Assembly (NCBI GenBank): GCA_965202585.1
Contig: OZ241830.1
Coordinates: 9,982,001-10,046,000, forward strand
Length of the DNA: 64,000 bases
Direction of reading: 5' to 3'
Source of the DNA: Thalia democratica
Taxonomy: Eukaryota
Positions 5,165-62,793 of this stretch are shown here, in pieces. Every line of letters begins with the position of its first letter. Positions within the stretch are counted from its first letter, which is position 1. Both the position numbers and the translations under genes were made by a program. Under the pieces are notes generated by a model. It was given only the letters and a program-made list of their open reading frames with translations, ran no database searches and was not told the origin of the DNA.

Positions 5165-6520
5165 CTAGCAATTAAAAATAATGAATTAAAAAATAATATT
5201 GTAAAATAAAATAAAACTACAACCTAAAAACCTTAAACTCAACTTTTACATTAAAACTGATACTTTACAACAAAATGTAAGTACTTGGAATCAGATTAAA
5301 ATATGTTTTAAAGCAATAACTAATTTAGTTTAGACTATATTTGCTTATAAAGCTGTTTTGTATAAACTAAATGTTTTAAACACACTAAAATATTTTTGTC
5401 AAGTTTTTTTCAATTTTTTTTCAAACTATGTTATATGCTTAAAGTTACTTAAAAACAACTAAATAAATAAAAACATAAAAGTAATGTTCTGACCTCATTT
5501 GAGTAATTTTCTAGTGATTTTGTGGAAATTTCTATATCATTGTTCTGTTTTGTATTTGTTGTCGAGTTGTTCTGCGCTTGATGTGGTGACACCTGATTGG
5601 TTGGAATCGTTGGTGGATACAAAAATCTGAAAAATATACAGTTGTATAAATAACCTACACAAAAATAATTAAAGTAGATATTTAAGCTCTTTAAAATTTT
5701 ACTGTTTATGTTGTTTAAAGTTATGAGTGCTACAAAAGCTTTGAAAATATTTTCAATATGCTTGTTAAGAAAAGCAGTTGTGGCTTAGATAACACATTAT
5801 CAAACTAGTTAAAGTATAAACTGAAACCTGGAAAGTTTGTAAAGGTTAATTTTGAAGTAAAAGAAAGACAACATATATATGTAATTAAGTAGAATCAAGT
5901 TCAAATAAATTAGTAAATGTTTTCTTTGTGCTATGGGTGAAACTGTAATTACAAAATTTTGCTTTTTGCAAACAGCTTTTTATGTTATACTGCATGTACT
6001 TATTCTTAGATGAGCTTTAATTAGATGACTTAAAACAAATATTAAATATGAATTATAAACATTAGGGACATCGATAAGGTACAGTAAGTTGTTAACCTAA
6101 CCTTGTGACTCCGGATGAACACGCTTCTTTATTAACAAGAGTTGAAAAATTAAAAACAATAAATATACATTTATACATTCTATTTTTCAAATCTCACCTG
6201 GTTCCTCCGTAAGAAGAAGCTTCGTTGTTCACCGGAGTTGGAGGAGCCGACCAGCAAGGAGCCGCGGAAAATGAGGAAGAACACCCTGATGATATACCTG
6301 AAATTAATTAGTATATATATATATATATTTATAAGAATATAGTTAAAGTGGTATTTTAAACGTATTCGGAGAACATCCTGATGATATGGCTGGGATTATA
6401 AATTACCGTAATTATTAAATATTATTAAACATAATGACTTTAAAATAAATAAGGATGACGTAATAATGAGGATGACGTAATAAATGAGGATTACGTACCT
6501 GAAATTAACTTATGAATAAG

Positions 6521-6570
<50 letters not shown>

Positions 6571-9500
6571 ATAAATGAGGATGACGTAATATATGAGGAT
6601 GACGTACCTGAAATTAACTTATGCATAAACATACATATATGTATATATATACATATATAATAAATGAGGATGACGTAATAATGAGGAGGACATACCTGAA
6701 ATGGCACCCGATGAAGAGTTGCCTCCTGAACAACCTGAAACTCCGCTGTCGCACCTAAAATTATAAAATTATTAAAGTTTAATAAAACATTATATTTAAA
6801 ATAATTTCATCAAAATTTGTTGGTTTGTATAAAACTTTCTTACTTTTATTTGTCTGAATAAAATAGAAACATGAACAATGATTACAAAAAAAACAGTAAA
6901 AACTAAGTTTAGGGTTTTTAATTCTTTACGTTTTGCTAAACTATTAAGAATATAATAAAATAAAAACGTTAAACATTTTTACCTCTGCATGCTGACGTCA
7001 GCGCTCAGCGACGAGCTGGAAGTTCCCGCCGATTCTCCGTCACGGGAATTCCCCACCAAGCCCTGGGAGTTTCCCTGCAACGACGCCTCGGTGTGGCTGC
7101 GCGGCCTTCCCCCGCTCGTCACCCTCTCGGAGCTCCTCGGTCGCGACGCGGATCTTTTGTCCGCTATGCGGCGCTGCGTGGCGGTCGAATGTTTCGCGGT
7201 TTGGGGACTTTTTTTCGGGTTGAACGAGGGACTGCTCGTTACTGACATACTGCCTGTTGAAATATCAACTATTTTAATTTTTAATTTTGTTTGTATTAAT
7301 AAATTTTCATGCTTCCTATGTACTCAATTGCTTGTGATAAAATTAGCACGGTGTTCGCACGCTCGGATTAGTTTGTGTAGATAAGTGTGTATGATAGTTG
7401 AAGTTAGTGTTTTGTCAAGTTGCTTTTGATTCACTTACTTACAAAATTCAACAGTGGATTACTTTTTTGCTTGCAACTGATGAGTTAAACAGTTAAAAAC
7501 GTCAAGTTTTTGGTAAATAAAAATAATCAGTGTTTTGCGTAAGTTCATAAAAATCAAAACTGAGCTGAAAATTAGAATATTATATTTAACTAAAAGTATC
7601 AAAAAAGCTCACCTGTTCTGCTGGTTTCATCACCCGCTGGTTTGGCGACGTCGAACATGAAAACTTTCGATTTACCGTCGCTTCTCTCGCTTTTCGGTTC
7701 GGATAACGACTCGCAACTGGACGGGTAGGCCGACTCGTACAGCGGGAAGAGCTTGTCTGAAAATTTCAAGTTTTTTTCTTTACTAATTAAATTTTTTTAT
7801 TTTAATGTAAATAAGCGTGCAGAACTGCAAATTGTATTTTTAATAATGTTGCCTCAATCATGTTATTGATTGTTTGAAGTATGTTTTTTTTCAAAAATTA
7901 AAAAAAATATTTATTAAAAATTAACTACTAAATTAATCAAATTACTAGTAATTTTTTTTTATATTGTAATCGTTATGAATAAGTGTGCAGAGTTGCAAAT
8001 TGTTTTTCTAACAATTGCGTCTCAATTATGTTTTTGATTGTTTTTAGTGCATTTTTTCAAATTTTTGAGCGTGTCTAAAAAAACTTATTATTTCGTTATC
8101 AAAGTGATTAAAATAATCAAATCAGCATAGTCCAAAAAACTTGAGGAAGCAAAAATTACTCCACGTTTTTTTTTTGTTTTACATACTATTTAAGAAAAGT
8201 AAGTAAAAATTAATAATTTAATAACAAATGAAAAACCTTTAGAATGCACTTTGTTACTTAGTCATTAATACTAAATAAGCTAAATTTACAATTAAATAAA
8301 AGAACAAAAAATTTTAAATATCACACAACTATTTTTTTAAATATACAAACAATAAAAACTGCTAAACATGCTACTATTATAATAGGAACGGGTCAAAACT
8401 GCACGAAGACAAAATTACACGCGGATACTTTTGTACGAGGGAAAAAAAATTGCACGAGTTACAATTTTTGCACGAGAATAAAAAAAAAACAGGAAAGGAA
8501 AACTAAAAACCAAATTAATAAAAAAACAAAAAGAAGAAAAAGTTACTTACCGAGGGTAAGGGTAACAGTGATAGCAAAAAAAAATTTAAAAAAGAAAAAA
8601 AAAACCCGTGCACAAATGTCTCTGTGCAAAATTGTCTTCGTGCAAAAGTGACCTTCGTGCAAAAGTGACCCTTCGTGCAATCTTGTGCCCTCGTGCAATT
8701 TTGTACGCTCGTGCGAATTTGACAGCTTCCCATTATAATGTTTCAAACGTGTATTTAAAATCAAACACACTTAGAATTTAAGAATAAATGAGTTAACTAC
8801 TAAGTTATCAATCTCTTATTACAGACGTATGAAGTAAAACTGTCATACAAGATTTCAACACTAACTGATCAATCCGTCGTTGCTGTTCGACGAAGTAAAC
8901 GAGTTCCCGCGCTTTAATTTTTCGTGCACCAAATTGGCTCTTTTCATTATTTTCACCACCTGGTGGGGCTCTTCGGCGCTGCAACGCTCCTGATTGGCTC
9001 TCTCGAACGTTTCGTCGTCCAATGGTTGTTCTTCTGGCGGAGAAATAAATTTTCGTTAGTTTAAAAACTACTATCTTAATAAGGACAGCACATAAATATA
9101 TTCAGCTGAAGACATGAAACATAACTGGTTTAAATTTAAATAAAAATTTTTTGGTATAGATAATTTTTTTTTGTTTCATAACGATATAGAACAGTTTTTG
9201 AGCATATTTTTTAATAAAGTTTTAATAAAAACATTTCAGACAGAGTATAATAGTTGTAAAATTTAAAAAAATATTTGTACAAAAAATACAATATATTAAT
9301 TACATTTTAATGGACATTTAATCATAAATTGCTTTTTTGATATTTGTAATAAAAAGTAGTGTTGTTTTAAAAACGTAAATGTGGTTACTTGATATAAGAA
9401 ACTTTAAAAAACATATATAAACTTAAACCTAAATTTAAGCTTAATACTAACCACTACTTTTAGGCAGTTGTATCGACAACGCCGTGGATTTTGTCTTTTT

Positions 9501-12500
9501 TTTCTTTTTCAGGTTTTCTTTGTTTTCTTTCGCCCTACACTCGACTACTATCTTGTTCTTGCAGGACTTGTGGCAGTTTATTCCACAAACTTAAAAAAAA
9601 AATTATAACGTTTAATAAACAAAACAAGCTCGTTAAAACGATAAAGTATGCTAGTTTTTTTTGAAACATTAAATTATGTACACTAGAATTGAACAAGTAA
9701 CTAATTAGCTTCAGTTTAGTAAAGCTGTGTACTTTTAGACAGTTTTGAAAAAGAAAAAAAGGTTTTTTAAACACTTGTTAGTAATTTAAAAAGATTTTTA
9801 AAACACATTTTACGTTTCAAAAGCTTTGTTGAGTATAACTATTTTGTGCTATTATTGTTGAAAATTGTTGATTTTATGACAGAGTCTTTGTTAAAAGTAG
9901 CAAAAAGTGAAAAATAATTTTCTAATACATTATACATGATTTACTAGTGATTTGAGTTTATTGTCAAACTACAGTTTCATAATAGAACCATTACCAAATA
10001 TCATCATTTCAAAAAACTTATTGAAATTATTACAATAAACCAAGTTGTAACCGATGATCACTGTTATTAATGCCACTGTGAAACGTTTTTTTTTTACAAA
10101 AACTTAAATCAGTATTATCTTAAATCTTATTGTTACAACTGTGAAACTGTAGTTTTGTAATAAAGATAGATCAGTAATAAATTGTTTTTCTGAATCTCTT
10201 TAACTTTTAGTTGTGCAAAGTTTTACTAGCTTTATTTAAATTATTTTTAAACAACATAAGAACTTAATAGTTATCACATAAAAAAATCGTTTTGTCTGTA
10301 TGGATGTTTTATACCTTCTAACTCAAGCACTGTATTAAAACTATTATACTGATATTCGTTAATAAGATAAAAAGAGTTACAATAAAAAGTAAAGAAAAAA
10401 AGGTATAAAAAAAATTAAAACATTTCTAACCTCGGCACTTCCAGCCCTGCTTTACCAATCCCCAAAGCTGTAAAAAAAATTGAATAAAAATATTTTTCTA
10501 TTTAAAATAATTTTTAATTAATACAACACAATAGTATAATAACAAAAAATATGAATATGGCGATATCAAATTTAACACAATAATAAGAAAAAAACTTGGC
10601 TAAAATAAAATAGAAGGAATGTCATTTAAAATTAAGTTATTTTTTTTTATTCATATAATCTTTTGTTGTTAGTATAACACATTACTACAATAACAAAAAA
10701 TATGAATTTGATGTTTAAACATATATTATAGTAAAAAATATGAATTTAACACAATAAAAAGAAAAAAAAAACTTGACTTTGATTGAATACAAGGGATGCC
10801 ATTTCGAATAAATAAATTCTAAAATGTTTTAAGCTTTTGTTGTTGATATTTAAAAAAAAGTTTTATCTTGCTGTAACTTGATATTGTTGAATATACAAAA
10901 GCATTCTTATAAAAATACTTTGTTGCTAAATATACATTTTATTAATATATCATTACTAAAATCTTAGGTATTTAGATTTATATTGTTATAACTCTATTAA
11001 CAATATGGTTGAAGTTTATCCTTTAAAAAAGAACTAAATGTTTTTTAATAATTTGATACTTAAAAATAGTTTAATTAAAATAGTTAGTCAAGTTTCAAAA
11101 TGATTTTAAGCTAGATTAAGTTTATTTACTTTAATGCTTATTATTTTTGCCTAATAACTTGAAATACAAAAATATATTTATTATTGCAAATTGTACGTTT
11201 TTTATAATTTTAAACTAAAAACTATACATGGTCTTAATTTTTTTGTTAATAAAAGTTTCCTAAGCAAATAGAAAATAGGAAGTATAGCGTTTGTTAATAT
11301 TTAAATACTTAATGTTAAATCAATATAACAAAAAGCTGTTCATTTAATCTGTTTTACCTGCAAAAGTTATTTTAAATTTTAAACTATTATTAATTATGTG
11401 ATATAAACGTTTAAAAATAAGTTAAGCAAAAACAATACAAACGTCTTTAGCTTGTAAAAAGTATATAAAATTGGAAGAAAGTATTTTCGAAGTTTATTTA
11501 ATTTTAGAAATGGAAATAACAATAAAATAAATTTACTAGCAAAACTGGTATGTTTATTTTTAGTAAGGACAACAATATGAAAACAACAATGTTTACATTT
11601 CTAGTTTTTTCCCAATGGACTTTTTTGTCAGCATAAAAAAATTTTAAATGTCAATGTAGTTTCTTACAAAAATTAGATTTAAGAAAAAGTTTATTTATAT
11701 ATAGTATACAAAAATAACTATTTTTCATTTCTTTAAAATTCAAAGTTTTGTTTAAAGAAATTCAGAACATTTAAACTATAAATTTTACACAATTTTAAAA
11801 ATGCGTTAAAAATGTTGTACAAAAACGTGCGTTCTAAACTCTTTAAGTTTAAAAATAACTTTTAATTGAAAATTAATCAGGCGTTTTTATAATACATGTA
11901 TACTTAATTTACATATTTGTTATTGTATTTTACAAAACGTACGCACAAGTCTGCTATTTTTATACTAGCAAATGATAAAAATTTAGTGCATGTTTAAAAA
12001 AACAGTTTCAAAATATATTATAGTTAGTACTTTAACCGGTAACTTTAATAAAACCAAAAAAAAAGTTTGACAAACTTAAAATAAATAATACGTCAGCAAA
12101 AAATTAGATAGATATTTTCTAAAAATTAGAAAACGTCCAAATGTTAAAAGAAGGAATGAGCTTAAATTATATGAAACTTAAAAAAAAAAGCTTAAGTATA
12201 TTATTTTAATTAACTAACCACCTTCCCACACCTGTCACAGAATGTCATATGGAAGTATTAAATAAATAAAAATTAAAGTAAATAAATAAAATAAAACTAT
12301 TAAAATAAGTAATGAACTTACCACTTTTCCACATCTGTCGCAGAACGTAAGGTGGAAGTAGGTGGTTTCCTGAAAATCGTGCTGGAAGTTTCCGAACACG
12401 TCCTGCTTCCGGTTCGATGTCGACGTGATTCGGAGGAAATAATCGAACATCTCACCAGTTGATATGTACCCGTCCCTGTGTGATAATATAATCTTTTAAA

Positions 12501-15500
12501 ATATATGTTTAATTTAAACCAATTGATATGTATCCGTCCCTGTGTATCAGAATAATAAGGAAATATTAGACGTAATGTTTGTAAACAATAACAAGTAACT
12601 AGAAACTGCCTTATATTTCAAATAAAACATTTGAAAAAAAATTCAATTCGGTATTTATTCGTCCCTTAGCAAAAATTTAAAATGAAGAAACCTAGTTCTT
12701 GTCTGATTAAGATATATAGCTGAATACTTTTAAAAACTATTTACGCAGTAAACATGCATAGATCAGTTAAATGTATTAAAAGCAATCGCTATTTTAATTT
12801 AGTTTCAAGGAAAAATTCTTTATAAATAAAAGTTCTGTGTTCAGAATAATATTTTAGTTATAATCGCACTGTACGGATAAAAGCTTGATAGATATCAATA
12901 AAAAAACGCTTTATTCTTTTTATGTTGCTAATAATGTTGCTCGGTAAGTTTCAAATTCTTCAAGTCAATCATATTTTTAGATACGCTAAAAGTCATTTTT
13001 ATTTTACACCGTATCAAATTCTATGACGTCATACTTATATTTTCTATTGTGACGTCACTAACTTGTCAGTGTCGACGGTCTGAAAGTCGTCCAACTCCTG
13101 AAAGTTGTTGGTGAAGGAGGAGAACTCTTCCTCTGAGATCAACCCGTCGCAATCGAGATCGTACGCTTTGAAGACCGACTGTTGGAAAATAATAAAAACT
13201 TAATAAACAAGTGAAACTATAAAAAATTTAATATAATACAAATAAATACATATATAAAATATGCTAAAACGTCATAGTCAAGATCATACGCTTTGAACAC
13301 AGACTGTTGGAAATAAAACATTAAAAAAATAATAAAACTGGATATACTTGTATATTTTATTTATATCCGTCACAATCAATATCTTACGCTTTTAATACGT
13401 ATCAAGTGTTTAGTGATAAAAATTCTAAAAAGAAGCATCAACATTTATTTTTTAGTTTTTTATAACCAAATCAGTATGTTTGATTTGTAAACGAAAAATA
13501 AAGTGTCTTTCAAAAGCAGTTAAGCTTCTAATTTCAAAATACAATAAAATATTAAACTGGAAACAGTATTATGTTTAAGTAATTTTTTATGATATTCATA
13601 CAAAAACAATTTTTTTTGAATATTTTATTTCTTTATGTCAGTAGGTAAAAAATCGTTGTTTAGAATGTGACACAAAAAATTAATAAGCCTAACTAGATTC
13701 TTTTTATAAACAGTTCGTCAACTTATTAGCAATGACTAGTGTGTTTCTCATAGCATGCATAATATTATAACTTTCAATGATATTACAAAAAAGCTATAAA
13801 TTAAACATAACTAATATTTATTTCTCTTTTAAATGATTAATATCGATATTTTCTATTATGACGTATGAATCCTTAGTGATATATCAAACATTAGTGCGTA
13901 AGAATCATATGTACTTTCGGCTATAATTTAAAACCATAACAACGATTAAATTGGTTATTAATTATTATTAAACATTAAAAAACCCAAATTTATACTCTCT
14001 AAGAAAGTATTTACATTATGTAGTTCTTATAGTATAAAAAAAAAAGAAAAAAGAAGTACTGATTGATTTATTTGAAATTTTTATACAGAACTAACATAAA
14101 TTTAGACGTTATTTTCTCTTTCAGTTTATAAATAGCTGATTCGCGACAACCATGAGATTTATTGGGTTCACATGAACTTACTTTAAATTTAACTAGGCTT
14201 TCATTTTCAGTAATGAAATACCGTTAGAAGTTTGAAATATAAACTTAAGCTTTTTTATAATCTAAATTACAGTAATAGCTTTCGTTTAAAAATATTAAAC
14301 AGTTAGTTTGAGAGTATATTTCAAATTAAAATTTATTTCAACTCATGTTTTACTTGAAAACTTATTATCTGAAATTTTTTATGTTATAAAAAAAACTGAG
14401 TATTTTAACATTTTTATAACCCACAACTTACATCGACAATGCTTTATACATGCTGTCTCTTAGCATTAGCTAGTTTTATTTAATTTAATATTAATTAAAG
14501 TAACTAACATCAACAATATTAGACACATGTTGTCTCATAGTGTTTGTGTTTAATTGACAAGTGTATCTGGCGAAATCCGCAAACCCAATGTTTTCAAAAG
14601 ACAACTTGTTACTGGGACTCTGTAATAATACAAACAATTGTTTACTTTTATGACATGACAATAAAGTAATGATGATAATAAAACAACTAAAGAAATCTAA
14701 AATTTTTGAATAGTTGACTAAAACAGTTACTAATCAGTGTAAGTAAAACTTTGTTCATGAGATTATTACTCGCTGTAGCTAAAATATTACATTTATATAT
14801 AAATTTTTGTGCTTAATAGGAAGAAAACTATAGATAGTTTTGAAAGTCTAACACGCTATAATATACAACTATAGTACTTTGATAATTTTCAGTTTCCTTT
14901 AGTTTATGACAATGGCTAATAACTTTATTTTAAATTGTCACTTTTGGTATCTTATGACGTAGGTAAGATAAAAATAAGCTAACTTGAACTTTTAATAAAC
15001 TCTTTATTGCTTGAAGTATAATTTTAACTTATCAATAAACTAATTTAAGTCGCAATAATGCTACCTACAAAATAACTCTTGTTTTCCACAATGGAAGCTT
15101 ATAAAAAGATTAATTTAACCTTAAAAATATTATATTTTTTAACTTTATTTTAATCATGTTTAATCAGCACAGCTTTAAACTTAAATGTGCAAATATTTTA
15201 CGGTAAAAGACAACACTTTTCACAAACTTTAAAAACGTTAGTTCTGCATAAAATAATAACTAGTAGTTAATTTTCTTTTAAAACTATCAGTAATAATTCT
15301 TTTATAAAAAAAAAACATAAAGCAAAACTTTTTTGTGTCTAAATATAAAAAAAAAATTGTAAATTGCTTAAAATATCAAAATCATGCTTAGTTTATAATA
15401 TTTTAATAGCTTTTTTGTTACATACTTAGTTTTCTTATTCAATTTAGCAACAAAACCTTATAAAATTATGAAATACAGCAAAAAGAAAAAAACATACAAC

Positions 15501-18500
15501 ATTTCCATTATTCTGGCTCCTCCTAGGCTCCCTGATCTCAGACAACTTGTAGATCTCGTCTTCAGAGTATTCCAGGTATAATGCTTGCCTGACAGCTGAA
15601 ATCAGGTCAGTGTTGATGTCGAACGGAAACTCAGCTCTTTGCATTTCTATCAGTTCCTGTGTAAATAGAAAAGTAATAAATTTTTTAATGATATCTGTTA
15701 GCTGCATCTATATTAGTTCCTGAAGATGTTTTGTGAAGGTATGAAGTTGAAACTCTAAAATGTGCAAACTTTCTTTTAAAACTAAAAGCTGCTTGTTTAG
15801 TAAGACTTATAACCGTAAAATGTATTACTTTAAAAATAAATTTTAAGTACTTATTTAAAATTCATAAATAAATTTACTTAATACTTATCAAAAGCTTATC
15901 TAAACAAAGCTGATTTAAAAATAAGTAATAGAGCACAAAAAAATAAAGACAATTTTTAACACTACTTATAAAGCTTTCAACTATATCTAGTTTTTTAAAA
16001 CGCTTCATACTTTAAAAATTTTAAAAACTACATTATTATAATCCGTAAATATTTCACTGGTAATGTATAAGCAACTGTTCTTTAAAAATAATTAAATTAT
16101 TTGGTTTGATTTTTAAAAGTTGCAACAAGTACAAACCTCGAGCATACCACTGATCATATAAAGTTTCTTCACATTTAAAAAATCTAAGTATTTAATTATT
16201 TGAAAATAAACGTATTTAGATAAACAAAAACTTTTTAATAAAATGATTAATTTTTTTATTACATACATACCTCGAATATACCACCGATCATGTAGAGTTT
16301 CTTCACATTTATTTTGCTTCCTTCTAATTTATCTGGGTTTGCCGCTTGGACTGCTATAAGGTCTTTCAATACTATCGCTCTGTTTAAACATTTGATTTTG
16401 CAGAAAAATGTTTAATAAAAAGACTTTGTTTTGCTTTGTTTAAATACTTCGACTTTAACACCAACTAAAATAATTTTAAAGTTAAAAGTAAGAATTTATT
16501 TTAACTAGAGTACGTTGGATTCATAGTACGTTTTTTTATTGTTTAAGATTAACAGCTCTATAACATAAAACGTCTTCAACATGTCCGTTTAATAAAATTA
16601 TATAGCTTTATAAACTAAAACCAATCAAAGCATTGTAGTTGTTTAGAGAAACTCATAAATAACAAATTTATATTTACCTTAATTCATATAAGCAGTACTT
16701 TATGTTATAGCACAAAAAATTAAATGTATGTTTGTTTAGTTATTTTACTTAAGTTAGCACTTTTGTTGCTAAATTGAATAAGGAAACTAAATATATAACA
16801 AAAAAAAACTATTAAAAGATTATAAACTAAGGTTGATTTTGCATATTTTAAACACTTTACAAACATTTTTTGTTATATTTTGACACGAAAAAGTTTTGCT
16901 TTATGTTGTTTTTAGAAAAAAAAATAACTTACATGATAGGAACTTTGAACTTAATCAGTAATTTTAGCGTAAGTAAACTCGTTATTATATAACAAAATAC
17001 TTTTTTTCCAACTCTACCACTAACAAACCATATACTTCTATCAACTTTTGTTAGTAATAACTGTAACTTACATGATAGGAACTTTGAATTGATCGGTTAT
17101 TTTAGCGTAGGCTCTTCTGTATTTGCTGTAGTTTGCTTTGGAATCCAACAACTCCACAAACTTTTCCAAAGTCTGAATAAATTAGTATATTGTTTATTGA
17201 ACTTTAAAAAAAGCGTTCAAAAAGTTTGGTCTAAGGACCTGGTGTACGAAAAAACCTTTAGGTTATCAAGTCATACATTACCTACTTAAACAATTACTTA
17301 CGAGCTAAAATTAACAGTTTTTTTTTATAAACTTTTAAACCTAAAAGAAATAGAGCAATCAATAAAATGAACAAAAGAAATAAAAACAGTATCGCGATAT
17401 TATATAATCAAAGTACCTAAAAGCCATTAATAATTATTGGAGCTTGTAAAAAAGGTTTAAGTTATTAACATCATATATCTAAGTTTTTGAGCTCCTTTAA
17501 CTCAAACAAGAATATTTTTGTTTATAGCATTGAAAAGAAAGGTCAGTTATAAGTATCAAAATAATCATATTTTATAACTAGTACAGTAATTTTTGCTTAA
17601 TATTATTTATTTCATTAAACTTTGTTTGACCAATGGTATTTGAACTATATCATACAACACATTTAAATAATTTTTTTACTTTTATAGCCAACACATATTT
17701 ATGTCATAAAAAAGCAGTTTTAAAGCGCTACAAAAAACAAAGTTTTATAGCATTTTTGCTAATATCGCCAATCGTTTTATGGTAGCAGTAAATAGTAATA
17801 CAAAATCATTTATATAAACAGAAATACTATGTTATATTGTATTCTTTTACCTTCATAGCATCTTTGCTGATTACGCTCATCGTTTTATGATAGCAATAAA
17901 TAGTAATATAAAAACAACAACATAAACAGAAATATTATGTTATATTGTATTCTTTTACCTTCATAGCATCTTTGCTGATTACGCTCATCGTTTTATGATA
18001 GCAATAAATAGTAATATAAAAACAACAACATAAACAGAAATATTATGTTATATTGTATTCTTTTACCTTCATAGCATCTTTGCTGATTACGCTCATCGTT
18101 TTATGAAGTCTCGCAATCGCAGTGTGCTCTAGAGCGCCCACTATCGCTCGTAATGTGTTGAAATTATTCATTTCATGCAGTTTCTGCAAAAATAATAATA
18201 ATTAAATCTGTGAATGTAAAGTGTTGAAATTTTTTATTTAACTAAATTTCTGTAGTAAATAAAAAATAAATAAATAGCTCTCGTTAAAAGTTAAAAGTTT
18301 TCGTTTCATGCAGTTTTTGCGAAAATAAAAAGCTAAAATACTAAAAGTAGACATAAATTTTAGATATTTCTTGTGTACTTCTGTGATCTGACTCTTATAA
18401 AGGTAAAAGTTTTTATGTTTTTGTAAAAACTGTTGTAAACAAAATTGTACGTAGTTTTTATGTTTTTATCACATTATTGCTAGTTAAATTTCTATGTAAA

Positions 18501-21500
18501 AGTTCTATAGCGTTACTCATCAAAATAAATGTTTTTTTTTTTTAAATATTGGCCAAAATTAAAATTAAAATTTTTGTTTCATGCATTTTTTAAATTTCGT
18601 CTAGTTTGACACTACTCCAAAACCTGTTTACTTTACTTTGATTTAAAATATCAAATCTACAGGAAATTTGTTAAACCAAGAATATATTTGTAATAATTTA
18701 AACATAGTAATTCATTTTAACTTCTTTAAAACTCTACGTAATTTTTGTAACTTTTCAATTCTTGAATTATCAGAATATTAAACCAAACGAGAAGTTAAAC
18801 GAAACATTTAACAAGTCCCTTTATAAATGTAATTTGTACAATTAATGTAAATAATAGAATATTTAACTACCACATTTATAGTATGAACAAATTTAAACAA
18901 TCTGTAAACTTCTATGACTTTTTGTTGAAAATTGGAAATGAATAATGTTATAGTATTTAGAGATTTAGCGTTATCATTTATGAGACGATATATACAAAAT
19001 TTTATTGAAAAACTTTCATAACTGCTGTGTTACTGGTTTTGAAAACACAAAAGAACATAAAAACAGTGTTGTAAAAAGTATTTACCAAATTAAATTAGTA
19101 AGTATTGTTTCAGTTGTAAAAAATCACAAACAAGCATTTACTGTATTTTGAAAGCGTTACAAATAGAATTTAAAATATTTTAAACTTGTACTGTATTAAT
19201 GTAAAAACATGAAAAACATTAAAAATACAAGAAAAATCACATAGATGATCAATGAACTATTGTCGAAAAAAATTTGTTTAACAGCATAAGTTTTGACAAT
19301 TAAGTTGATTCTAAATAAATAACAGAACAACAAATTGACATGTTGTTTTTGATAAATAAAGTTTCTGAAACTTAAACGGTTTAAGTGCTAATAAATTTTC
19401 TTATTCTTTTAAAGCTGACTGATTGATCAGAAATTTAACAAATATACTATAGCATTAAGTTTCTAAAGTTTTGTAATTTTAACTTTGATATGACTTGGAA
19501 TTTTTAATTTCAAAGAATTGCAGAAACTAAATATAAAAACAGTAATATTTGATATTTTTGTTTAAAATCCAAAAACAAATTACGAAATTCAATACTCATT
19601 TCAATAATAAAGATAAATTACATCTACGCAATTAGATAACTTTGTTCGGTATTTATCAAAAAATGCCTTTATTTTTCGTAATAATTAATAAAAAGTTTAA
19701 GTTCAAAATTTTTTTAAATTTATCTTTAAAGGAAAACAATACAAATAATGTGAAGTAGTTTGTTAAGAAAATATTTTGACATTGTCTAAATAAAAAAAAA
19801 ATTATCCAACTAAACTTTTAAGTGTTTACATTTTTAATCGAAATAAAAACTATTGTGAATGTTGTTGAACTAATTATGTTTTCCATATTTTTGTTATAAT
19901 TTGTTGTATGCAAACATAAAAAGCATGTAAAAACAAGCTTCAAACAATACAATTCTGAATGTAACAAAGTTAAGTCTCTATAAAAAAAAAATTGTGCATA
20001 GATACTTTTTACAAAAGCTCTCTTGACAAAAAAAAAATACACAATTGCTTTAACATTCTGTAACATATGAATTGTATATCTTTTCGTGCAATAAAATGTT
20101 TTATATTCCTACAGTTGTGAATTTATACAAAAATACCCAAAAGTAGTTTTTGAAATATTTCATTACAAAGTCAAGTTAATTAGGTAACACAAATTTTTTA
20201 ACTAACAACATAATGATATTTATACATTCAAAAGAAAGAGAAAATTTGAAACACGTACTCATAGATATAAATTTAAATAAGTATAAATCATCACTACTTC
20301 AAACTTAATTACTTGAATTAATATTTATGAACATTCTCTATGAATAAAATATTCGAATCAGACTTTCAGTGAACTTACGTAATTTTTTAGTTTAAACAAG
20401 TTGTGATTCACTAAAATTAACATATCGATTTTTAATTCCAGCTTGTAATTAAATCTAACTCGTTTATGAAACTAAATTAATAATTTATGAACTCTCATGT
20501 AGTTAGATGAATTAGCTGGCAAACTTTCTTTAATTGTTGCAACTCGCTTACGTAACTTTAAACTTGAACTTGTTAATTTTTTTAACTGATTTTTACTTGA
20601 TATAAACCATGCGAAAAGTTATAAGAAAATAAAAAAAAAATTATGAGAATTAAAAAATAATAGTGTTTTACTACTTTGTAAAAACTATAATATTATAATT
20701 TATAATATTTTAAGAGTAAATTATCTGAATACAAAAGTCAATAATTACTATATTTTTCTTTGAAAATTTTCTTTTTATATTTTTAGGTAAGTAAAATAAG
20801 CATATGTAAGGTTATCAAAAATATTTTTAAACTGATATAAACCATACTTATAATTGCATAAAGCTTTAAAACTAAAAGATTGTATTTTAAAATTAAGTTT
20901 ATAACAAAGCAAATTCAAAATTTTATTCTTAATCAAAAATTACTCTGATAAAAAGGGAACAAACTTAATTGTTGCATAACTTGGTTAATTTTAAAAATAG
21001 AAACATTAACATACAAGCTCTAACTTTAAACAAAACTTAATTACAAATTAGTGCTTTAGTTGAACTTGTTTAAAAATGTTAAAGCAGTTAATCTTATACT
21101 CAGAAGTATAACATAATAATTTTACGTAAAAGCTAGGTTTAAAGATGAAATAAAGTTATTTGAACTTATAATCACATTATCTTTTCAAGTTTAATAGTAT
21201 ATTTAAGTATACTTTATTATCAAAATACTTTCAAAAGCATTTACTTCTTATTTTTATTTTTGCTTGGAAAAAGCTTAATCAAAACTGTTGATTTATAAAG
21301 TTTAAACTACAACAAAAACATTAAATAAAAATATACTAGTAATTGTCTATAAAGATAGAGTGAGTTTTTTACAGCTTTAAAGCGTAACATAATAGAAGTA
21401 GTTTTTGAATGATGAATTAGCCCTTTATACAAAGGTATTAGATTATTTTTGAGTAAAACTTGTTTAAAACTTTGATATTTATTAAGTTAAAATAAACTAG

Positions 21501-24500
21501 AATCTTATTTTAACAAAAATGTTAATGCTATCGGTTTTATAACTTCTTTCCTTTCTATGAAATTCTATTCAAAAAAATTCTCAAAACGCTGGAAAATTTT
21601 AATCATCTAATTCAAGTAATGTTTTTCTCTTTGATCTTAATTTCTTTATTATTTAACGTATTGTTTCGATATGCCTTTTTTAAACGTTTAAGTATCGTTT
21701 TTCATGCAATAAGTCTTTTAACACTTTAAACAAGATGCTTACACATTTTCGCTTATAACAAATCGATCTAGCATGGAAAGGTGTTTCTAGTTCAATAGAC
21801 GTAATACGCAATTGACACCTTAGGAAAATTTTCAAAAACTGCTATACTAGAACTAGTTATACTAAAGTATTTTGCAAAAGCAAATAATTAGTTTCAAATG
21901 CCCTCTAAAATCTTTGTATACTTCAATAGCTCAGTCGCTAGAAATTTTCAAAAACCACTAATTACCAGTAGTTTAACACTGCTTATTTTATAAAACTTTT
22001 TATTAACCTATTAAGAATATGTATGTTATAACGATTATTGATTAACTGCCCGCGGAAGAATTTGCTATCAATAGCTAGAGAACATTTATTCAAAAAAATA
22101 TATCAAAACTACGTCATTTGCACGCGTGACTAACCTCGGCAATCTGCAGAAACTTTGCTATTGCAGCGGCTCTTTCGGCTGCAGAGTGGTTCTCCAGTAT
22201 CATGCACTGCACCCAGTGGGTTATGTTGTTGCACAGGACGACCGCTCTCTCCAGCTTGCGGATCCCTTTGATGGATCCCCTCTTCAGATACTCCAGGTAG
22301 TCCGCCACCTGAGAAAACAAGTTGGAAAATTATTTTTCGAGAATCAATATTTTCTTGGAATTGATGTTAAATTGAATTTGTGTCAAATGGAACAAGCGGT
22401 GGTTACGTAGTTTTGGTTTATAGCGTTAAAACTACTGAAACGTTTTATCATTGTTAATATTTTTTAGCTTAATTTGGTTGTAAAAAGAGTTTGCTGTTAT
22501 AAACAAAAGTTCTGATATCAAGCAGATTGCTAGCTACAAGTTTACTTGCTTTGCAACTAGTTTCACTGCTTTAAATCTGAGTAGTAAAAAAAATTGTGAA
22601 ACTTTTAAAGAGCTATATGGTTTAACTTTGAAGTATTAAGTGAACAGATCAAAATTTTAAACAGTTTTATTTTATGTAGTAGAAAGTTAAAAGGTGTTTA
22701 ATTATTAATGTTGATAAATTTGAAATAAACTTAAAATTTATGTAGTCTAAAGCATGTTAAAATGGTAAAACTGAAACTTATTCGGACTAAAACAGTTTTG
22801 ATTGACTATTTAAGTGCAACTTTTGGTTCATTTATTCCACACTTAGTCTTAAAATCATTTCTTTATCATAAATACTGTAGCTTGTTTTAGTGAATTATAT
22901 CTTATAAAATACAGAAATTTATTTAATTCTAGTTATATTTAGCTTTAAATCGTTTAACTGAACAACTTATGTTGTAGAAAGATTAATATTCAATATTTTA
23001 AATGATTTCGAAAACCTTACAAACAAAACTAATTTTTTTCAAATCATTAATGCACAGTAAAATAAGAATTCTGTAAAACAAAAGTTTAAAAGCGATTGGA
23101 TGTTTAGTTGTTTACATTTATAACCCCAATGGACTTAAATTGGAAATCATTATGTAAGTATTGAAGGTTACGTAAGAAAATATGAATAATTAATCTGCTA
23201 AAGTTCTAAATATATAAACTTTTGGTTTTGATATAAAACATTACCTTTTCTGCTAAAAAAAATTTTGACTAGAACTAAAATTTAAAAGTTTTTTGAAAAT
23301 AAGTTTCACATACTTTAAATAAACACAAGAAAACTATAATCATTTTAAAACTACTTTTTACAGCATATTAGCTTTATTGACAATACGATAAAGTTAAAAA
23401 CTTGGAATACATAAGATTAAAAGAATTTTATATCAAGTTAAATTGGTACTTATGGTAGCTAGCATAATTTCTTTAAACATATTTTTTATATGAACATACA
23501 AGCATGCATTAATACTTATTTCAATAAAATTAACTAGCAGATAATCCTCTAAATAATTTATACTTTAAATAACTTGTTAATATATTTAGTTTTATACTAT
23601 CTAACAGACAATTTTCTGAAACATTAACTCATGTGAATTGCTAGTTTATAAAGTTGTTTTTTTATTTAGATGATTTAATACAAATGAATAATAACGAAAT
23701 GAGTTTATGAATTTATCATTGTATTCCATACTACTTAAATATTTATATGTATGTATCTCTGTAACTACATATTTAACTAACAGACTGCCTTCGGAAAGAC
23801 TTGTACTCCATACTACTTTAATATTTATACATGAAACTCTGTAACTACATATTTAACTAACAGACAATCTTCTGAAGCACTTGTACTCCATGTAGCTGAT
23901 GTGAATCGCCAGCTCATGCGGTTTCAGGTGATTGAACACCAGCGAGTATTTCCTCAGTTTCTTGTTGACGTCTGTCGGTCTTTTTGATATCTGGCACCTC
24001 TGAATTATTCCGAAGTTGCATCTTAAAAGTTTAGTTTGTTGAGTTAGAGATGTTTTGAGTTATGGTTATTTTTTCAATTTTATTAAGTTTTTTTTTTACT
24101 GTTAATTAATAAAATATATAAATATTTTTATTATTAAACGTGAAATATGTTAGTTTTTTTCGATAAATTACGCTAAAAATATTTAACAAAGTAGTATAGT
24201 TGGTGTTGAAAAAACTTTTTTTTTTGTCTTAAGTCAAGCAAAAAGTTTAAGAAAGTTTCTAATCAACTTAAAAAAAAGTGAGCAGTGATTAAAAAAGATA
24301 AAACAAATAAAAATGAATATATATTTCAAAGTCAAGAAAAAAAAATTAATATAAATAAACTCAAGTAGAAAAATGTTAAGCTGTATTGATATACAATAAA
24401 AATTAAATCTTATTTTACGAATGTCAGAAAAATAAGTATTTAATTTTGAAAAATAAAAACTACATAAACCTTTTTATTAGCCGTTTTGTACTAGGTTCAT

Positions 24501-45929: not shown

Positions 45930-46770
45930 AATCTACAGCCAGTAGATCATTATGTTTATTATGCAAACATGTCGTTTAGAAAGATAAACCAACTATTAAC
46001 CAACAATCTAACTTTCTGTTAAAATTTTCTAAACTATACCTTCAATAAAAAAAGAGCATTCCTGTCTAAAATAAAACAAAATCTTAAACTTTTTAAACAT
46101 AAAAAAAAGACACTGAATTAAATTATTTAAATGTAAAACCAGTAGATATGGCTACATTAGTAATTGATTACCAAAGAAAAGTATAGCAATTAAACACAAT
46201 TAACAACAATCTAACCTTTTAATAAAGTTTAGTCAAAAACTTTAGCATTTTATTTATATATAAAAAACTTCAAACATAGTTACTGAAGTAAAACTAAATT
46301 ATTAACAACTACAACCAGTAGCTTAAGATGTTTACTGTGTACACAACACAGTAAACAACAAGTAATTGATTGATCAAAAAAGATATAGCAACTAACTATA
46401 TGGTATCTAAACAATCCAAAATTGTAATAAATTTATTTAAACTACATTACTCAAAAAGAATTTAAGCATTCTTGCCTATAACTAAACAAAAACTTCAAAC
46501 ATGAAGACTAATTTTTAATTAAGTTATTAAAAACTACAACCAGTAGCCTAAGATGTTTACTGTGTACACAAGTAATTGACTGCTCAAGAAAGATATATCA
46601 ATTATAATGGTATCTACAAGATCAAATCTTGTAATGAATTTATTTAAACTACATCTTTTGATAAAAAAATTAAGCATTCTTGCCTTTAACTAAACAAAAA
46701 ACTTCAAACTGAATTAAAACAAAATTATTAACAACTACAACCAGTAGCATGTTTGCTGTGTACACAACAC
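45930..46770. repeat. degenerate ~200-nt tandem array (5 units)
   Basis: CTACAACCAGTAG-like anchor at ~45933, 46135, 46309, 46534 and 46735, followed by ATGTTTACTGTGTACACAA in the best-preserved units. Confidence 0.8.
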
Positions 46771-55299: not shown

Positions 55300-56097
55300 G
55301 ACAAAAATACCCAGGTGTTGGTTGATTATAGGTATAGGAGTATTATACTGAAGGTTTAAAAATAAAGAAATACTTTTTTGAAGTAATTACAATACTATTA
55401 AAAAAAAATTAAAAAAGTTTTATTCAAGTTTAATGGTTTTAAAGAAGTTCAGTTTATTTAAAAATAAATTTTAAGTTAATACAATCATTAATTTTTTTAA
55501 ACTTTTTGATCATATTAAACTTATAAAAGAAAACAAAGAACTCCAAGCTTAGGCTTAAAGTTGCAAAAAAAAAGTCTGAATGACATTTCGTTTATTAAAC
55601 TGTTTTAAGTTTACAAAAGTGAGAATTTTTTCTTTTGATATTATGCTGTAATAAAAAGAAAGTTACCGCATCTCTTAAAAATAAAAAGACATCTCATAAC
55701 TGCTACTAAAAACAAAATCCTGTGTAATACGTAATAATGTCAAAGTTAACAAGTAAACCTTCACTAAACTACCAAAATAAACTGCTGTGAACAAACCCAA
55801 CAACTTCTATGTACTATTATGAGTGTACAGGAGTATTGAATCAAACTATAGTTAAAAATGAAATTAAACTCATTAAAAACATCAATGTAATACACTGACG
55901 TAATAATGAAGTCTTCTCTGCTTCACTTTTGATTTTATACTGTCGCTCCATAGTAAAGTGACATTAATTATTCAAAAACTTCAACTGAATTAAGTTTGAT
56001 TTATTAATTTTTATCATGAAATGGAAAGTCCTTGGTTTTTAACGCTGTTTTTCCTTTAAAAAGCTTTAAAAAACTAATCTTCACTTAAGGTTCTACA

Positions 56098-60366: not shown

Positions 60367-60506
60367 TCAGTCATAGTAACGGTTGCCACGCGACCTGTAC
60401 GTATGGGCAACAGGGTGCTTTTGTTTGAGGGGTAATAAGGGGTAGTTGAAATGTTTCCTGCTTCTTATGCAGGTCAGCATAAGTTCAGTGTATGTTAGGT
60501 TGTTTC
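60367..60506 (-). CDS. plakin terminal exon (GNNLTYTELMLTC...RYYD*)
   Basis: ttccaacag acceptor, phase 1, TGA at 60369-60367; absent from the ORF track. Confidence 0.88.
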
Positions 60507-62793
60507 CTGTTGGAAAAACTATCAGCTATTTTCAGTTAAGCTGAACATTGTACGAAAACCATTAAAGGTTGTAAAAATAGTTTGAAAAATTTTTACTTTT
60601 CAAATAATTAAAATAAAATTAATATAATATAAATCTTGCTCTTAGCATTATAGTACTAAATATAACTTTTTTTTCATCAATAAATTTACATATTAGATGT
60701 AGATAACATACAGAATATTAATTACTTTTAACGTAGTTGTAGCACTAAATCAAATTTAAGTCAAGTACTTATAACAACTAACGGTATTTTTTAACGGTAT
60801 AAATTTTAGTTGTTCCAATAATATATTTGACTTTAACCCAACCTGAATTTGGGTCATAGTATCCTTTCAATCCCATATCGTTCCTCTTATTGGTCAATAT
60901 TTCAGCCAATCGCTGATCTAATAATTTTCTCTCTAGCGCCACCGAGGGTGGAATCCTGTACCCGGCCACGGGGTCGATAAGCCCCCCTGTTGCCAACTGG
61001 GCGTCCAGCAACCGGATACCGTGGATCTCTATGACAACCCCTTTTCTGTGATTTTTAATTTATAATAGTTTTAATGATTTAGTATTTAAGCTGTATATTT
61101 GATAGATATTCAGTGGTTTGTACTATAACTGTATCAAAACACTCAACTAAATTATAAGTTTAGGTAAAAAAGTATGAAGGCTTTGTAGGTGAACACTCAA
61201 TCATTGTTTTAATTTTAGTAAAAATATGTTAAAATATTTTTTAGTTGGTTTTAGATCAATCCAACTTTTTTTTAGGTCATGTCACAGTTTAATTAATTAG
61301 CTAACGAAAAATTTTTAATTTAAGTATAAAGTACTTTTCAAGTAAATTATTGCATTGTCTTTTTTACTGAAATAGAGTTAAAAACATAACTTCATCATAT
61401 ATTAAGTATGCATATATACAAATATATGTATATTTAAAATTAATAAGAAAAAATGTACTTACTTTAGTTTTCTAAATAAGTTTTTATTAAAGCAAATACA
61501 TAAGAAAATCATTTAACTTTGAAAATTACAGACCTATATACCTTTTAAAGTTTATTGCTTGTTTATTTTATAATTTATAGAGAAACTATTAAGCTTTTTT
61601 TCTCAACACAAATTATATTTCTCATGCAAACGTTTCGCAGTGTATATAGGTAAATCAGTATTTTAATAGTTCAAAACGTGATTTACTCTGAACATGATTT
61701 CTACTTTTAAGTCAACTAGCTTCAAAATTTTACAAGTTTATAGGAAACTGCTAACATGAAAATGTTTCTCGTTTTTCAAGCTCTAAAAGTTGTTATATTA
61801 GAAGTAATTTAAAGCTCTTAATTTAGAAAGTAGTTCAGCCGAAAAAAACATTAAAATATCGATTATTATTTAGTTTTTATGTTAAGACAACATACAAATA
61901 CTTTTTTAGATAGCTTTAATATATTTAAACAACAATGTTTAACTTTTATAAACATTATATCAAAAATACTTAGTTTACTTAAACTTAATTAAGCTAAAGT
62001 TTTAAATTTATTTTAGATAGAAAATGTAAGATTAATCTCTAATGTTTAACAAAATTTTTGTAAACTTTTATATATCACTTAGTTTGTCTTTAAAAGGTTT
62101 CAACATAAGCATAATTGTTTTTCATCTTGGTTCGCTTTAAAATTTCTCTGTTGTATTTTAGCGTAATCAACCATAATTGATTTACCAATTGTCATAATTT
62201 ATTGATTTGATCAAAAATTTAAACCTGCTAGCTTCATATAAGGTTGATACCTTTCCACTTATAATATTCAGGTATACAGTACATATATATTTAAACAAAA
62301 AAAGCTATTACATGCCTGATGATAGCTTCATACAAGGATATTGTCTTTTACTAATGTGGTATTCAGATATATTGTATTGTAAAAGTATACATAACTAATA
62401 CATACATTATAGCTTCGTACAGGGATATTGTTTTATTCAGATATACTGTATAGTAAATATATACATAACTAATACATACCTTATAGCTTCGTACAGGGAT
62501 ATTGTTTTATTCAGATATACTGTATAGTAAATGTATACATAACTAATACTTACATTATAGCTTCGTACAGAGATATTGTCTTTCCACTTATGGTATCCAG
62601 ATATAACAAACATAAAACAAAATACACCTAGTAATTTATCATTCTTACCTGATAGCTTCATACAGTGATATCGTCTTCCCACTAATAGTATCCAAGTACC
62701 CACTAACTGCTTGTTCTGCTCTTTGGAGAGGAAGAACAAACTGTGGTAAGATGAGTCCTTCTTTGCTGGCTCTCTTTACAGACATCTTCTTTC
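60367..62793 (-). CDS. plakin-family gene (plectin/desmoplakin/epiplakin-like), last three exons encoding a plectin-repeat domain; 5' part lies beyond the window
   Basis: Spliced GKKMSVKRASKEGLI...AEQAVSGYLDTISGKTISLYEAIRKGVVIEIHGIRLLDAQLATGGLIDPVAGYRIP...KGYYDPNSGNNLTYTELMLTC...YPLLPL matches the plectin-repeat-domain pattern (HGIRLLEAQIATGG.IDP, KGFFDPNT.ENLTY). Confidence 0.93.
60843..61045 (-). CDS. plakin exon (KGVVIEIHGIRLLDAQ...YYDPNS)
   Basis: tcacag / GTTGGG, phase 2/1. Confidence 0.92.
62225..62603 (-). repeat. five intronic copies of the plakin exon 3' end plus donor site
   Basis: copies at 62554-62603, 62480-62517, 62406-62443, ~62317-62370 and 62225-62274 translate to YLDTISGKTISLYEAI-like peptides followed by a donor-like GT (GC in the ~62317 copy). 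Confidence 0.92.
62649..62793 (-). CDS. plakin exon (GKKMSV...SLYEAIR)
   Basis: ttaccag / GTAAGA, phase 1/2. Confidence 0.88.

Follow-up and report, generated by a model that had tools for sequence, protein, structure and literature searches.

The window, a 64,000-nucleotide stretch of Thalia democratica DNA, carries on its minus strand a RasGRP gene and, as its neighbour, a gene represented by plakin-repeat exons, likewise on the minus strand. Matches to REM, RasGEF, EF-hand and C1 domains, together with tblastn using full-length homologues, identify RasGRP and bear out the gene content given in a preliminary description of this DNA. The locus is very AT-rich (intron GC ~0.22) and free of N runs and gaps, and an Rfam comparison across the window returned no match. 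On the minus strand, we delimited 21 exons (18 of RasGRP and 3 of plakin), providing 42 junctions for testing. The exon limits coincide with the ends of the homologue matches, and the same intron boundaries are seen in homologues by sequence comparison. Junction E20|E21 is the only one confirmed, via the spliced relative P0149, a protein-level relative from marine metatranscriptomes that has ~10% amino-acid divergence and no DNA on record. The exon 16 open reading frame found no match in protein and contig collections, where the same species, a second haplotype or a relative's genomic DNA was sought.

Exon-end copies at splice junctions

The preliminary description reported that many of these exons have short copies of their own ends, splice site included, in the flanking introns. 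We searched for such echoes by Smith-Waterman alignment. Each query joined the terminal 70 nt of an exon to 12 nt of adjoining intron and was run against up to 1 kb of that intron, with random-intron segments as nulls. A strong echo was defined by a score of at least 40, and a looser cut-off was also applied. Strong echoes, i.e., a copy of the exon end with its splice site, were found at 9 of the 42 junctions (12 of 42 at the looser cut-off). Their scores of 46 to 104 compare with null maxima of 21 to 31. Only 1.1% of 1500 deep-intron pseudo-junctions had a strong copy (binomial p ~1e-9 against 9/42), controls placed inside RasGRP introns had none (0/383), and the exon-block ends in the RasGRP loci of three other species had no echoes either (0/48). 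Echoes are far commoner at junctions than in the intron controls, and local duplications in the rest of the introns are exceeded ~20-fold.

Chance similarity in low-complexity AT-rich sequence, coupled with ascertainment by eye, could cover the two weakest echoes (exons 5 and 13; p ~0.04). As a general account it has a negligible probability in view of the score gap and the binomial p value, and for the strong echoes it is ruled out by the random-intron nulls and the 1500 pseudo-junction controls. A detection bias toward GC-rich exons was also rejected. Raw-score thresholds leave the set unchanged, and such a bias would act in the opposite direction: exon queries are GC-richer than the AT-rich intron queries, which makes a given raw score less likely to arise by chance. 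The echoes are genuine direct duplications of short segments straddling splice junctions.

The exons listed in the preliminary description hold up in large part. Echoes were recovered on both sides of exons 10, 16 and 22 and on one side of exons 8, 11, 12, 14 and 15, and the search also found the echo claimed for one plakin exon out of three. Exons 5 and 13 are weakly supported, and at exons 17 and 19 an exon echo was not found, exon 17 having an intron-only duplication nearby. Alignment places the segment listed as exon 23 (~6128-6101) among the echoes, its parent being the end of exon 22.

Geometry, anatomy and inventory of the echoes

All echoes are direct copies located in the adjoining intron, 33 to 406 nt from the junction. 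No junction had an inverted copy (0 of 42) or one beyond the opposite end of its exon (0 of 42), and exon-internal copies were not found. Donor-side copies lie downstream and acceptor-side copies upstream, as had been described; this direction is partly mere geometry, and the non-trivial part is the absence of inverted or far-side copies. The accompanying statement that copies are more decayed with distance holds in four of five stacks and fails on the acceptor side of exon 10, where the nearer copy is more decayed. By inspection, GT is retained in around 15 of 17 echo donors. Splicing at any of the echo sites would lead to an in-frame stop within 2 to 29 codons.

Two types of echo can be distinguished. 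A few are young, true tandem units in which the intron part is duplicated as well, and most are islands, in which 22 to 47 nt of exon and 6 to 12 nt of intron (at most 24) are copied and the flanking sequences match no better than shuffled ones. Of 11 first-order echoes, nine have an intron part that, past the 12 nt next to the splice site, aligns only as well as shuffled sequence (z -1.2 to 1.4); the exon parts of the same nine are 80 to 91% identical. Some stacked copies have a common exon-side boundary, namely those at plakin 62599, 62347 and 62274, those of exon 15 at 13313 and 13398, and the exon 10 array.

All features listed here are on the minus strand. The end of exon 8 (Ec, 24021-23862) and its donor-side echoes occupy 23530..23892. 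Three echoes follow, at 23811-23770, 23623-23598 and 23564-23530. The one at 23811-23770 is a true tandem unit, repeating every ~80-82 nt; its intron part is alignable (z = 8.2), and its six differences are clustered within 14 nt, with identical flanks on both sides. Exon 10 (Ee, 18183-18067) is echoed on its acceptor side (18196..18589) at 18328-18290, 18262-18216 and, weakly, 18589-18565, with scores of 48, 36 and 24, respectively; the first copy is without AG, and the more decayed nearer copy contains a stop. On the donor side, exon 10 is followed by an array with a 108-nt period (17670..18106; 3.3 copies at 94% identity by Tandem Repeats Finder), comprising perfect units at 17998-17947 and 17890-17839 and decayed ones at 17781-17744 and 17688-17670, the intron part being identical (z = 13).

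The end of exon 11 (Ef, 17172-17072) and its donor echo span 16925..17109. This echo (16971-16925, score 71) contains TAA and a 1-nt insertion, and its flank aligns no better than shuffled sequence does (z = 1.4). Exon 12 (Eg, 16379-16271) and its donor echo (16177-16130, score 66), together spanning 16130..16311 from the exon end, differ by two synonymous and three non-synonymous codons, and the flank is again at shuffled level. For exon 14 (Ei, 14619-14509), the exon end and donor echo span 14425..14540; the echo, at 14463-14425, has a score of 33 (p <= 0.005) and a TAA inside. The start of exon 15 (Ej, 13178-13063) and two acceptor echoes lie within 13156..13398, the echo at 13313-13270 being coding-like in its divergence and the one at 13398-13367 decayed, with a TAA. 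Exon 16 (Ek, 12475-12322), within 12207..12545, has an acceptor echo at 12545-12518 and a coding-like donor echo at 12257-12207, with flanks at shuffled level. Exon 22 (E22, 6297-6198), within 6094..6700, has acceptor echoes at 6398-6370 and 6617-6598, further copies inside a 109-nt array (6444-6691), and a donor echo at 6144-6094, the former exon 23.

In the neighbouring gene, the region 62223..62696 holds the end of plakin exon P1 (62793-62649) together with its donor echoes, five in number. The echoes are located at 62599-62546 (coding-like), 62508-62477, 62434-62403, 62347-62320 and 62274-62223, and the middle three units form a 74-nt array with 93% identity. Two weak acceptor-side alignments complete the inventory, a gapped one at exon 5 (Ea, exon 27422-27307; 27452..27495, score 24, p ~0.04) and one at exon 13 (Eh, exon 15656-15498; 15703..15722, score 25, p ~0.045); these are the weakest two, and they may be due to chance.

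Codon-position divergence

The preliminary description held that echoes diverge from their exons mostly at synonymous sites. Its five codon tallies are accurate (7 to 9 synonymous to 0 for plakin, depending on the alignment ends) but represent a favourable subset: its pooled 24:7 synonymous excess becomes 32:30 over all 12 first-order echoes, the excess being confined to three of them. Simulation of neutral duplicates on the actual codons predicts 30 to 42% synonymous codons and 43 to 51% of differences at third positions. The 12 first-order echoes gave 52% (p 0.04-0.18) and 60% (p ~0.014), respectively, so the pooled excess over the neutral-duplicate expectation is marginal. The statement is untrue of echoes generally. 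Nine of the 12 fit the neutral simulation. Those nine differ from their exons at 24 of 98 third positions and 26 of 193 first and second positions, with 14 synonymous and 28 non-synonymous codon changes, and stops, a frameshift and AT drift occur among them. Copies of second and third order drop to a GC of 0.17 to 0.34.

The remaining three echoes (plakin 62599-62546, exon 16 donor 12257-12207 and exon 15 acceptor 13313-13270) differ at 20 of 39 third positions and only 3 of 80 first and second positions (p = 6e-5; ~0.013 when corrected for choosing 3 of 12, with a range of 0.002 to 0.08 by mutation model). Third positions and first plus second positions contribute 6/11 and 1/23 in the exon 15 echo, and 7/13 and 1/26 in the exon 16 echo. 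The contrast appears at A/T sites (9/17 at third positions vs 0/48 at first and second) as well as at G/C sites (11/22 vs 3/32); this stratification and the simulation rule out base composition or AT-biased mutation as its cause. Survivorship bias was rejected, since the codon-position split is unaffected when total differences are conditioned on. Gene conversion alone was rejected by argument, as it would erase synonymous differences at least as fast as non-synonymous ones. Furthermore, the three echoes have an exon-like GC content of 0.33 to 0.41, against ~0.22 in introns. It is reasonable to read their divergence as having mostly arisen under coding constraint. Plakin echoes of very unequal decay have common third-position states unlike the present exon, as judged by inspection. 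The donor echoes of exons 11 and 12 and the acceptor echoes of exons 16 and 10 combine low third-position divergence (12 to 22%) with unalignable flanks. Comparison of echo-specific residues with homologues showed that the echo variants are not those seen there, which is uninformative on whether the variants look functional.

Origin of the echoes and relation to known systems

We consider it somewhat more probable than its negation that the echoes arise by repeated junction-spanning duplication and unequal exchange, the exon-contiguous splice site staying in use. A local duplication would set a second exon end and splice site inside the adjoining intron. The gene would tolerate the duplicate because the exon-contiguous copy remains in use, on the assumption that the site contiguous with the rest of the exon is still chosen; the rule would be that the upstream-most donor or downstream-most acceptor is used. 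Exon end and copy would then form a pair of direct repeats 60 to 140 nt apart, to which unequal exchange or slippage could add units, and therefore stacks with the same boundary, some of them with perfect units including the spacer, would be expected. Patchy gene conversion may refresh a copy, as the mosaic identity of the first exon 8 echo suggests; otherwise, displaced copies would drift neutrally to intron composition. The tandem units at exon 10 (108 nt, three units, two perfect), exon 8 (~80 nt) and plakin (74 nt) support duplication, as does the fit of 9 of 12 first-order echoes to the neutral-duplicate null, most echoes decaying like non-coding DNA. The junction enrichment, the strictly direct and adjacent geometry, the boundaries common to stacked copies, the stops that would follow use of any echo site and the F7 precedent described below also speak for it. 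Against plain duplication, it predicts no junction preference beyond an at most 2-fold gain in detectability, where ~20-fold was observed. A simple tandem unit of the age implied by 80 to 91% exon-part identity should also retain ~80% identity in its intron part, which is at shuffled level in 9 of 11 cases, and neutral decay of a copy cannot yield the 20/39 versus 3/80 contrast. Junction-spanning duplication thus leaves unexplained the strong junction preference and the nearly third-position-only differences of three echoes. Both need an extra factor, possibly a diverged functional donor.

Such a donor is a tentative alternative. The coding-like echoes could come from, or have been displaced by, a highly diverged functional copy of the exon end, be it a haplotype, a homeologue or an introgressed allele. 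Either repair off a partner homologous only in the exon would enter non-homologous intron, with end joining duplicating the exon end, or an ordinary echo would form first and the exon end would later be overwritten by allelic conversion from a diverged lineage. This would account for three echoes undecayed at first and second positions (3/80) with half of third positions changed (20/39), at A/T and G/C sites alike, for their exon-like GC (0.33-0.41), and for the non-homologous intron flanks, which unalignable partner introns would produce. It predicts errors where homology stops, i.e., at junctions, and the common non-exon third-position states of the plakin echoes are easier to understand if the exon changed en bloc. 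A relative lineage at ~10% amino-acid divergence, P0149, is present in marine metatranscriptomes. However, the donors would have to be near synonymous saturation (about half of third positions), far past ordinary allelic diversity, the p value corrected for picking three echoes out of 12 is ~0.002-0.08 by mutation model, the echo-specific residues differ from those in homologues, and the four echoes with 12 to 22% third-position divergence and unalignable flanks are unpredicted. The preliminary description had gone further and proposed a ratchet of haplotype switching. In such a reading, third-position-only echoes would be former or foreign functional exon ends, exon-anchored repair or conversion repeatedly installing a new end and pushing the old one into the intron. 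We regard this as doubtful; it fits the three coding-like echoes and the non-homologous flanks but poorly fits the low-divergence echoes with unalignable flanks. If true, it would imply haplotypes or an introgressing sister lineage alignable only in exons, introns that lengthen, and a layered record of past alleles.

Selection on the echoes as functional non-coding elements, either decoy or auxiliary splice sites or U1-binding sites suppressing premature polyadenylation in AT-rich introns, is unlikely. Conserved islands would then be all that persists of old duplications, with the exon drifting at synonymous sites. It could account for the junction excess, for islands with random flanks and, if the echo is static while the exon changes, for the third-position differences, and GT is kept in ~15 of 17 echo donors. 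That retention, however, is not clearly above the neutral expectation, ~45 nt would have to stay near-perfectly conserved throughout a turnover of half of the third positions, many echoes are decaying (AT drift, indels, loss of AG or GT), acceptor-side decoys are without evident benefit, and the low-divergence islands with random flanks are not old. An assembly artefact, through interleaving of two haplotypes or homeologues at exons or false expansion of tandem units, is more improbable still. Duplicates would be expected at exon edges, where haplotypes are still alike, and so would synonymous differences and non-homologous flanks; yet two haplotypes cannot produce stacks that are up to five copies deep, decayed to graded extents and marked by stops, indels and AT drift, the diverged copy-exon similarity of just 22 to 47 nt is too short for overlap or k-mer joins, and the window is ungapped.

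Several other identities were rejected. Coding use through alternative splice sites or micro-exons is excluded because a stop always follows and the donor echoes lack a preceding acceptor. Copies of one exon end only (22-47 nt) that bring stops on inclusion, with exon-internal and far-side copies absent, do not fit whole-exon duplicates or mutually exclusive exons. A transposon or introner with target-site duplication was rejected, as nine spacers compared with each other and with the rest of the window gave no similarity beyond low-complexity matches and no common element. Intron gain by tandem duplication of an AGGT segment was rejected, each echo spanning an existing junction inside an existing intron. 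For templated insertion of the polymerase theta type, in which short nearby sequences are copied at repair joints in either orientation and from templates tied to no particular feature, the evidence is mixed. The sizes (30-60 nt) and the distances of the nearest copies (33-140 nt) would fit; inverted copies are 0/42, every copy holds the junction, and microhomology at the joints is not clear.

About a quarter of the junctions have decaying direct exon-end copies in the adjoining intron, and the 20-fold junction excess is unpredicted by standard neutral small-duplication models, whichever mechanism is right. If genome-wide, the echoes would point to a junction-targeted process of duplication or retention by which introns grow inward from their ends and splice sites become starting points for minisatellites. 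They would also offer naturally graded sets of pseudo splice sites in competition, useful for studies of splice-site choice, and might supply dated snapshots of exon sequence inside introns.

Literature precedents for exon-end echoes are confined to single loci. In intron 7 of human F7, a 37-bp VNTR begins with a unit that spans the exon 7/intron 7 boundary, and of the repeated donors splicing uses the upstream-most alone (PMC1557585). The arrays of exon 10 (108 nt), exon 8 (~80 nt) and plakin (74 nt) are similarly anchored on the exon end and followed by pseudo-donors; these three have junction-spanning head-to-tail units with the intron part repeated, as in F7, whereas 9 of 11 first-order echoes do not. 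In contrast to the single F7 locus, at least a quarter of the junctions are involved here, in two neighbouring genes and on acceptor sides too, and most copies are isolated islands and not whole tandem units.

The origin of introns by tandem genomic duplication has been described (Hellsten et al. 2011, PMC3265369; reviewed in PMC3443670). The echoes resemble this process in being small local duplications with splice signals, predicted here to be tolerated as splicing removes the extra copy; they differ in lying inside existing introns, so that an intron is lengthened and none is created. Internal gene duplications were reportedly treated by Gao and Lynch in 2009. As in tandem exon duplication, coding sequence and splice sites are duplicated beside the parent, and three echoes show coding-type divergence; unlike it, only one exon end (22-47 nt) with one splice site is copied, leaving no room for the remainder. 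The model of intron gain in Daphnia invokes repair of staggered breaks with filler DNA, giving direct repeats of ~5-12 nt around a whole new intron (PMC3443670). The repeats described here are 30 to 60 nt long, always include a splice junction and lie inside an old intron, but they likewise form a direct pair around an unrelated AT-rich spacer, and the islands could be read as long target duplications.

Direct copies of exon ends at splice junctions

Each junction was searched for echoes, that is, intronic direct copies of the adjacent exon end and its splice site, using the outermost 70 nt of the exon with the adjacent 12 nt of the intron as query and as much as 1 kb of that intron as target. 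Smith-Waterman scores reached 46 to 104 at 9/42 junctions, where null maxima were 21 to 31, and another 3/42 scored 32 to 33. The identical test on 1500 pseudo-junctions, each at least 250 nt away from any exon, gave scores of at least 40 in 1.1% (binomial p ~1e-9), so that the echoes stand well above the intron controls. All control matches of at least 40 trace to three satellite loci (44.4, 46.2 to 46.6, and 54 to 55.2 kb), and none occurred among the 383 RasGRP-intron controls. In the geometry controls, no copy was inverted, occupied the intron beyond the exon's other end, or reproduced an exon interior. In the RasGRP loci of three other species (35 to 36% G+C), 0/48 exon-block ends carried such a copy (Fisher p 6e-4). 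Almost every strong local direct repeat in the 6 to 24 kb interval had a copy at an exon edge, both in window self-comparison and in a sliding scan blind to annotation. This evidence base comprises two neighbouring genes in one window. In the numbering of the preliminary description, echoes were recovered for exons 8 (Ec), 10 (Ee), 11, 12, 14, 15 (Ej), 16 (Ek), and 22 (E22) and one plakin exon; those of exons 5 (Ea) and 13 are weak, none was found for 17 and 19, and the supposed exon 23 itself aligns as an exon 22 echo.

The 64-kb window has 24% G+C and no N, and both genes lie on its minus strand. RasGEF_N, RasGEF, EF-hand, and C1 domains were matched in exon ORFs (Pfam), and tblastn with full-length RasGRP homologues, obtained by profile-free search, placed 13 conserved RasGRP exons within 27.4 to 9.4 kb. 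Splice motifs and reading-frame continuity delimited 18 RasGRP exons, from EN (30136-30024), which contains the start codon, to E22 (6297-6198), and three plakin-repeat exons (62793-62649, 61045-60843, and 60506-60395). The RasGRP set omits the true last coding exon, which was not located, and a small exon (~20 to 25 codons) implied between Ea and Eb by phases and homologue alignment, which was not found in 25843-27307. G+C is 36 to 60% in exons versus ~22% in introns. The E20|E21 junction is confirmed by P0149, a 100-aa marine metatranscriptome protein (~90% identical) that spans both exons (6983-7756) and is the sole close relative that the protein collections contain; its source, "merc," was assembled at the protein level from marine eukaryotic metatranscriptomes. 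This origin hints at a marine planktonic animal, whose own species is absent from those collections. The commonest RasGRP donor hexamer is GTTAGT, not GTAAGT (EN, Ec, Ed, Ei, Ej, Em, and E19; e.g., 23861-23856), and the acceptor consensus is TTTCAG-like.

Anatomy and codon divergence of the echoes

The exon part of an echo is 22 to 47 nt long, lies 64 to 140 nt from the original, and in every case measures at most half of that offset. Two kinds were found. In young tandem units, the intron part is also repeated, as at the donors of Ee (108 nt period, two perfect and two decayed units) and Ec (~80 nt period) and in the plakin units compared with one another (74 nt period, 93% identity), all on the minus strand. 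The second kind, islands, makes up 9/11 first-order echoes: similarity ends 6 to 12 (at most 24) nt past the splice site, and the remainder of the presumed unit matches no better than shuffled sequence (z −1.2 to 1.4), while the exon part is 80 to 91% identical. No common element was found among echo spacers. The exon-side boundary is usually constant across stacked copies, as expected if the exon end exchanged unequally with its first copy. Patchy conversion is suggested by the mosaic first echo of Ec, in which six differences crowd into 14 nt between flanks that match the exon unit exactly. Coding through alternative splicing was ruled out because the predicted use of any echo splice site leads to an in-frame stop within 2 to 29 codons.

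The preliminary description held that echoes differ mostly at synonymous sites. Automatic tabulation of every echo by codon position gave, for the pooled 12 first-order echoes, 18/136, 11/137, and 44/137 differences at positions 1, 2, and 3, with 32 synonymous and 30 non-synonymous codon differences. The pooled synonymous excess is marginal, because a null simulation on the actual codons, in which the copy mutates freely and the exon takes only synonymous changes, already expects 30 to 42% synonymous codons and 43 to 51% of differences at position 3 across settings of transition bias and G/C hypermutability. The excess is uneven. Three minus-strand echoes (plakin 62599-62546, Ek donor 12257-12207, and Ej acceptor 13313-13270) account for it, differing at 20/39 third versus 3/80 first and second positions (p = 6e-5; ~0.013 corrected for picking 3 of 12), and they retain exon-like G+C. 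AT-biased mutation is not the source of this contrast, since it appears at both A/T (9/17 versus 0/48) and G/C sites (11/22 versus 3/32). The remaining nine fit the null (24/98 versus 26/193; 14 synonymous and 28 non-synonymous) and show stops, one frameshift, and AT drift, the last being stronger in second- and third-order copies. The five codon tallies of the preliminary description were counted correctly, the chosen set being the favorable ones. The E22-end echo (6094-6144), the supposed exon 23, shows an unusual split, differing at 8/14 first, 0/14 second, and 4/15 third positions, with mostly conservative replacements.

Possible origins of the echoes

As far as sequence can settle the matter, the echoes represent serial direct duplications of junction-spanning segments. 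We consider it moderately probable that duplication and exchange form the main explanation: a segment straddling the junction would be duplicated directly and serially into the adjoining intron, tolerated because the exon-contiguous splice site would remain the one used; units would be added as the exon end and its copy exchange, and copies would afterwards decay. At a single locus, the human F7 intron 7 minisatellite offers a precedent: its first unit crosses the exon boundary, and of its donors only the upstream-most is selected (PMC1557585). Tandem repeats anchored at junctions, and splicing that tolerates duplications, have been described before (PMC1557585, PMC3265369, PMC3443670). Our literature search found neither a locus where a quarter or more of the junctions bear such copies, donors and acceptors alike, nor any account of island-type echoes with coding-like divergence.

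Three facts go beyond duplication and exchange, namely the 20-fold junction preference, the islands with non-homologous flanks despite low exon-part divergence, and the three coding-like echoes. If the constrained exon copy served as a conversion donor, refreshed islands would be explained but the junction preference would not, and conversion opposes third-position-only differences. The preliminary description proposed a functional but diverged donor, be it a second haplotype, a homeologue, or an introgressed allele. As an addition, such a donor would account for flanks without homology, for the coding-like echoes, and for the location of echoes where homology ends, but it requires near-saturated synonymous divergence and poorly matches low-divergence islands with random flanks; we regard it as possible, albeit doubtful. 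Selection on echoes as splice decoys appears improbable: although it would cover junction preference and islands, conservation would have to be implausibly strict when many copies are visibly decaying. An assembly artefact is very unlikely as the origin of the echoes and would not build graded stacks with as many as five copies, and the probability of chance similarity is negligible.

Other repeats and G+C-rich segments

RasGRP contains only two intron-only local duplications (7810-7875/7978-8043 and 10518-10594/10669-10768), which lie no more than ~250 nt upstream of E20 and El, respectively, so even exon-free duplications cluster near exons. A satellite family with 17-18-nt units, whose consensus is close to GTGCAAAAGTGACCYTC, occupies 8590-8760, 54080-54510, and 55170-55360; one of these sites lies within a RasGRP intron, adjoining E19, and the satellite carries long spurious ORFs on both strands. 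The tandem array at 46263-46770 (period ~215 to 225 nt, ~2.5 copies), whose first unit starts within a G+C-rich island (46728-46945), could likewise be anchored to an edge, that of a putative non-coding exon.

Upstream of the RasGRP start-codon exon lie five G+C-rich islands (30300-30490, 32340-32590, 34560-34880, 36580-36730, and 39060-39350) that share no mutual similarity and are candidate alternative promoters or 5′ exons. Most bear between one and three CRE-like octamers, TGACGTCA or close variants of it, a motif also present directly past the donors of Ea and Ej. Between E21 and E22, a 59-nt G+C-rich segment (6697-6755), edged by AG and GTATGT, could be either an alternative exon, whose inclusion would shift the frame, or a piece of an E22 acceptor echo array.
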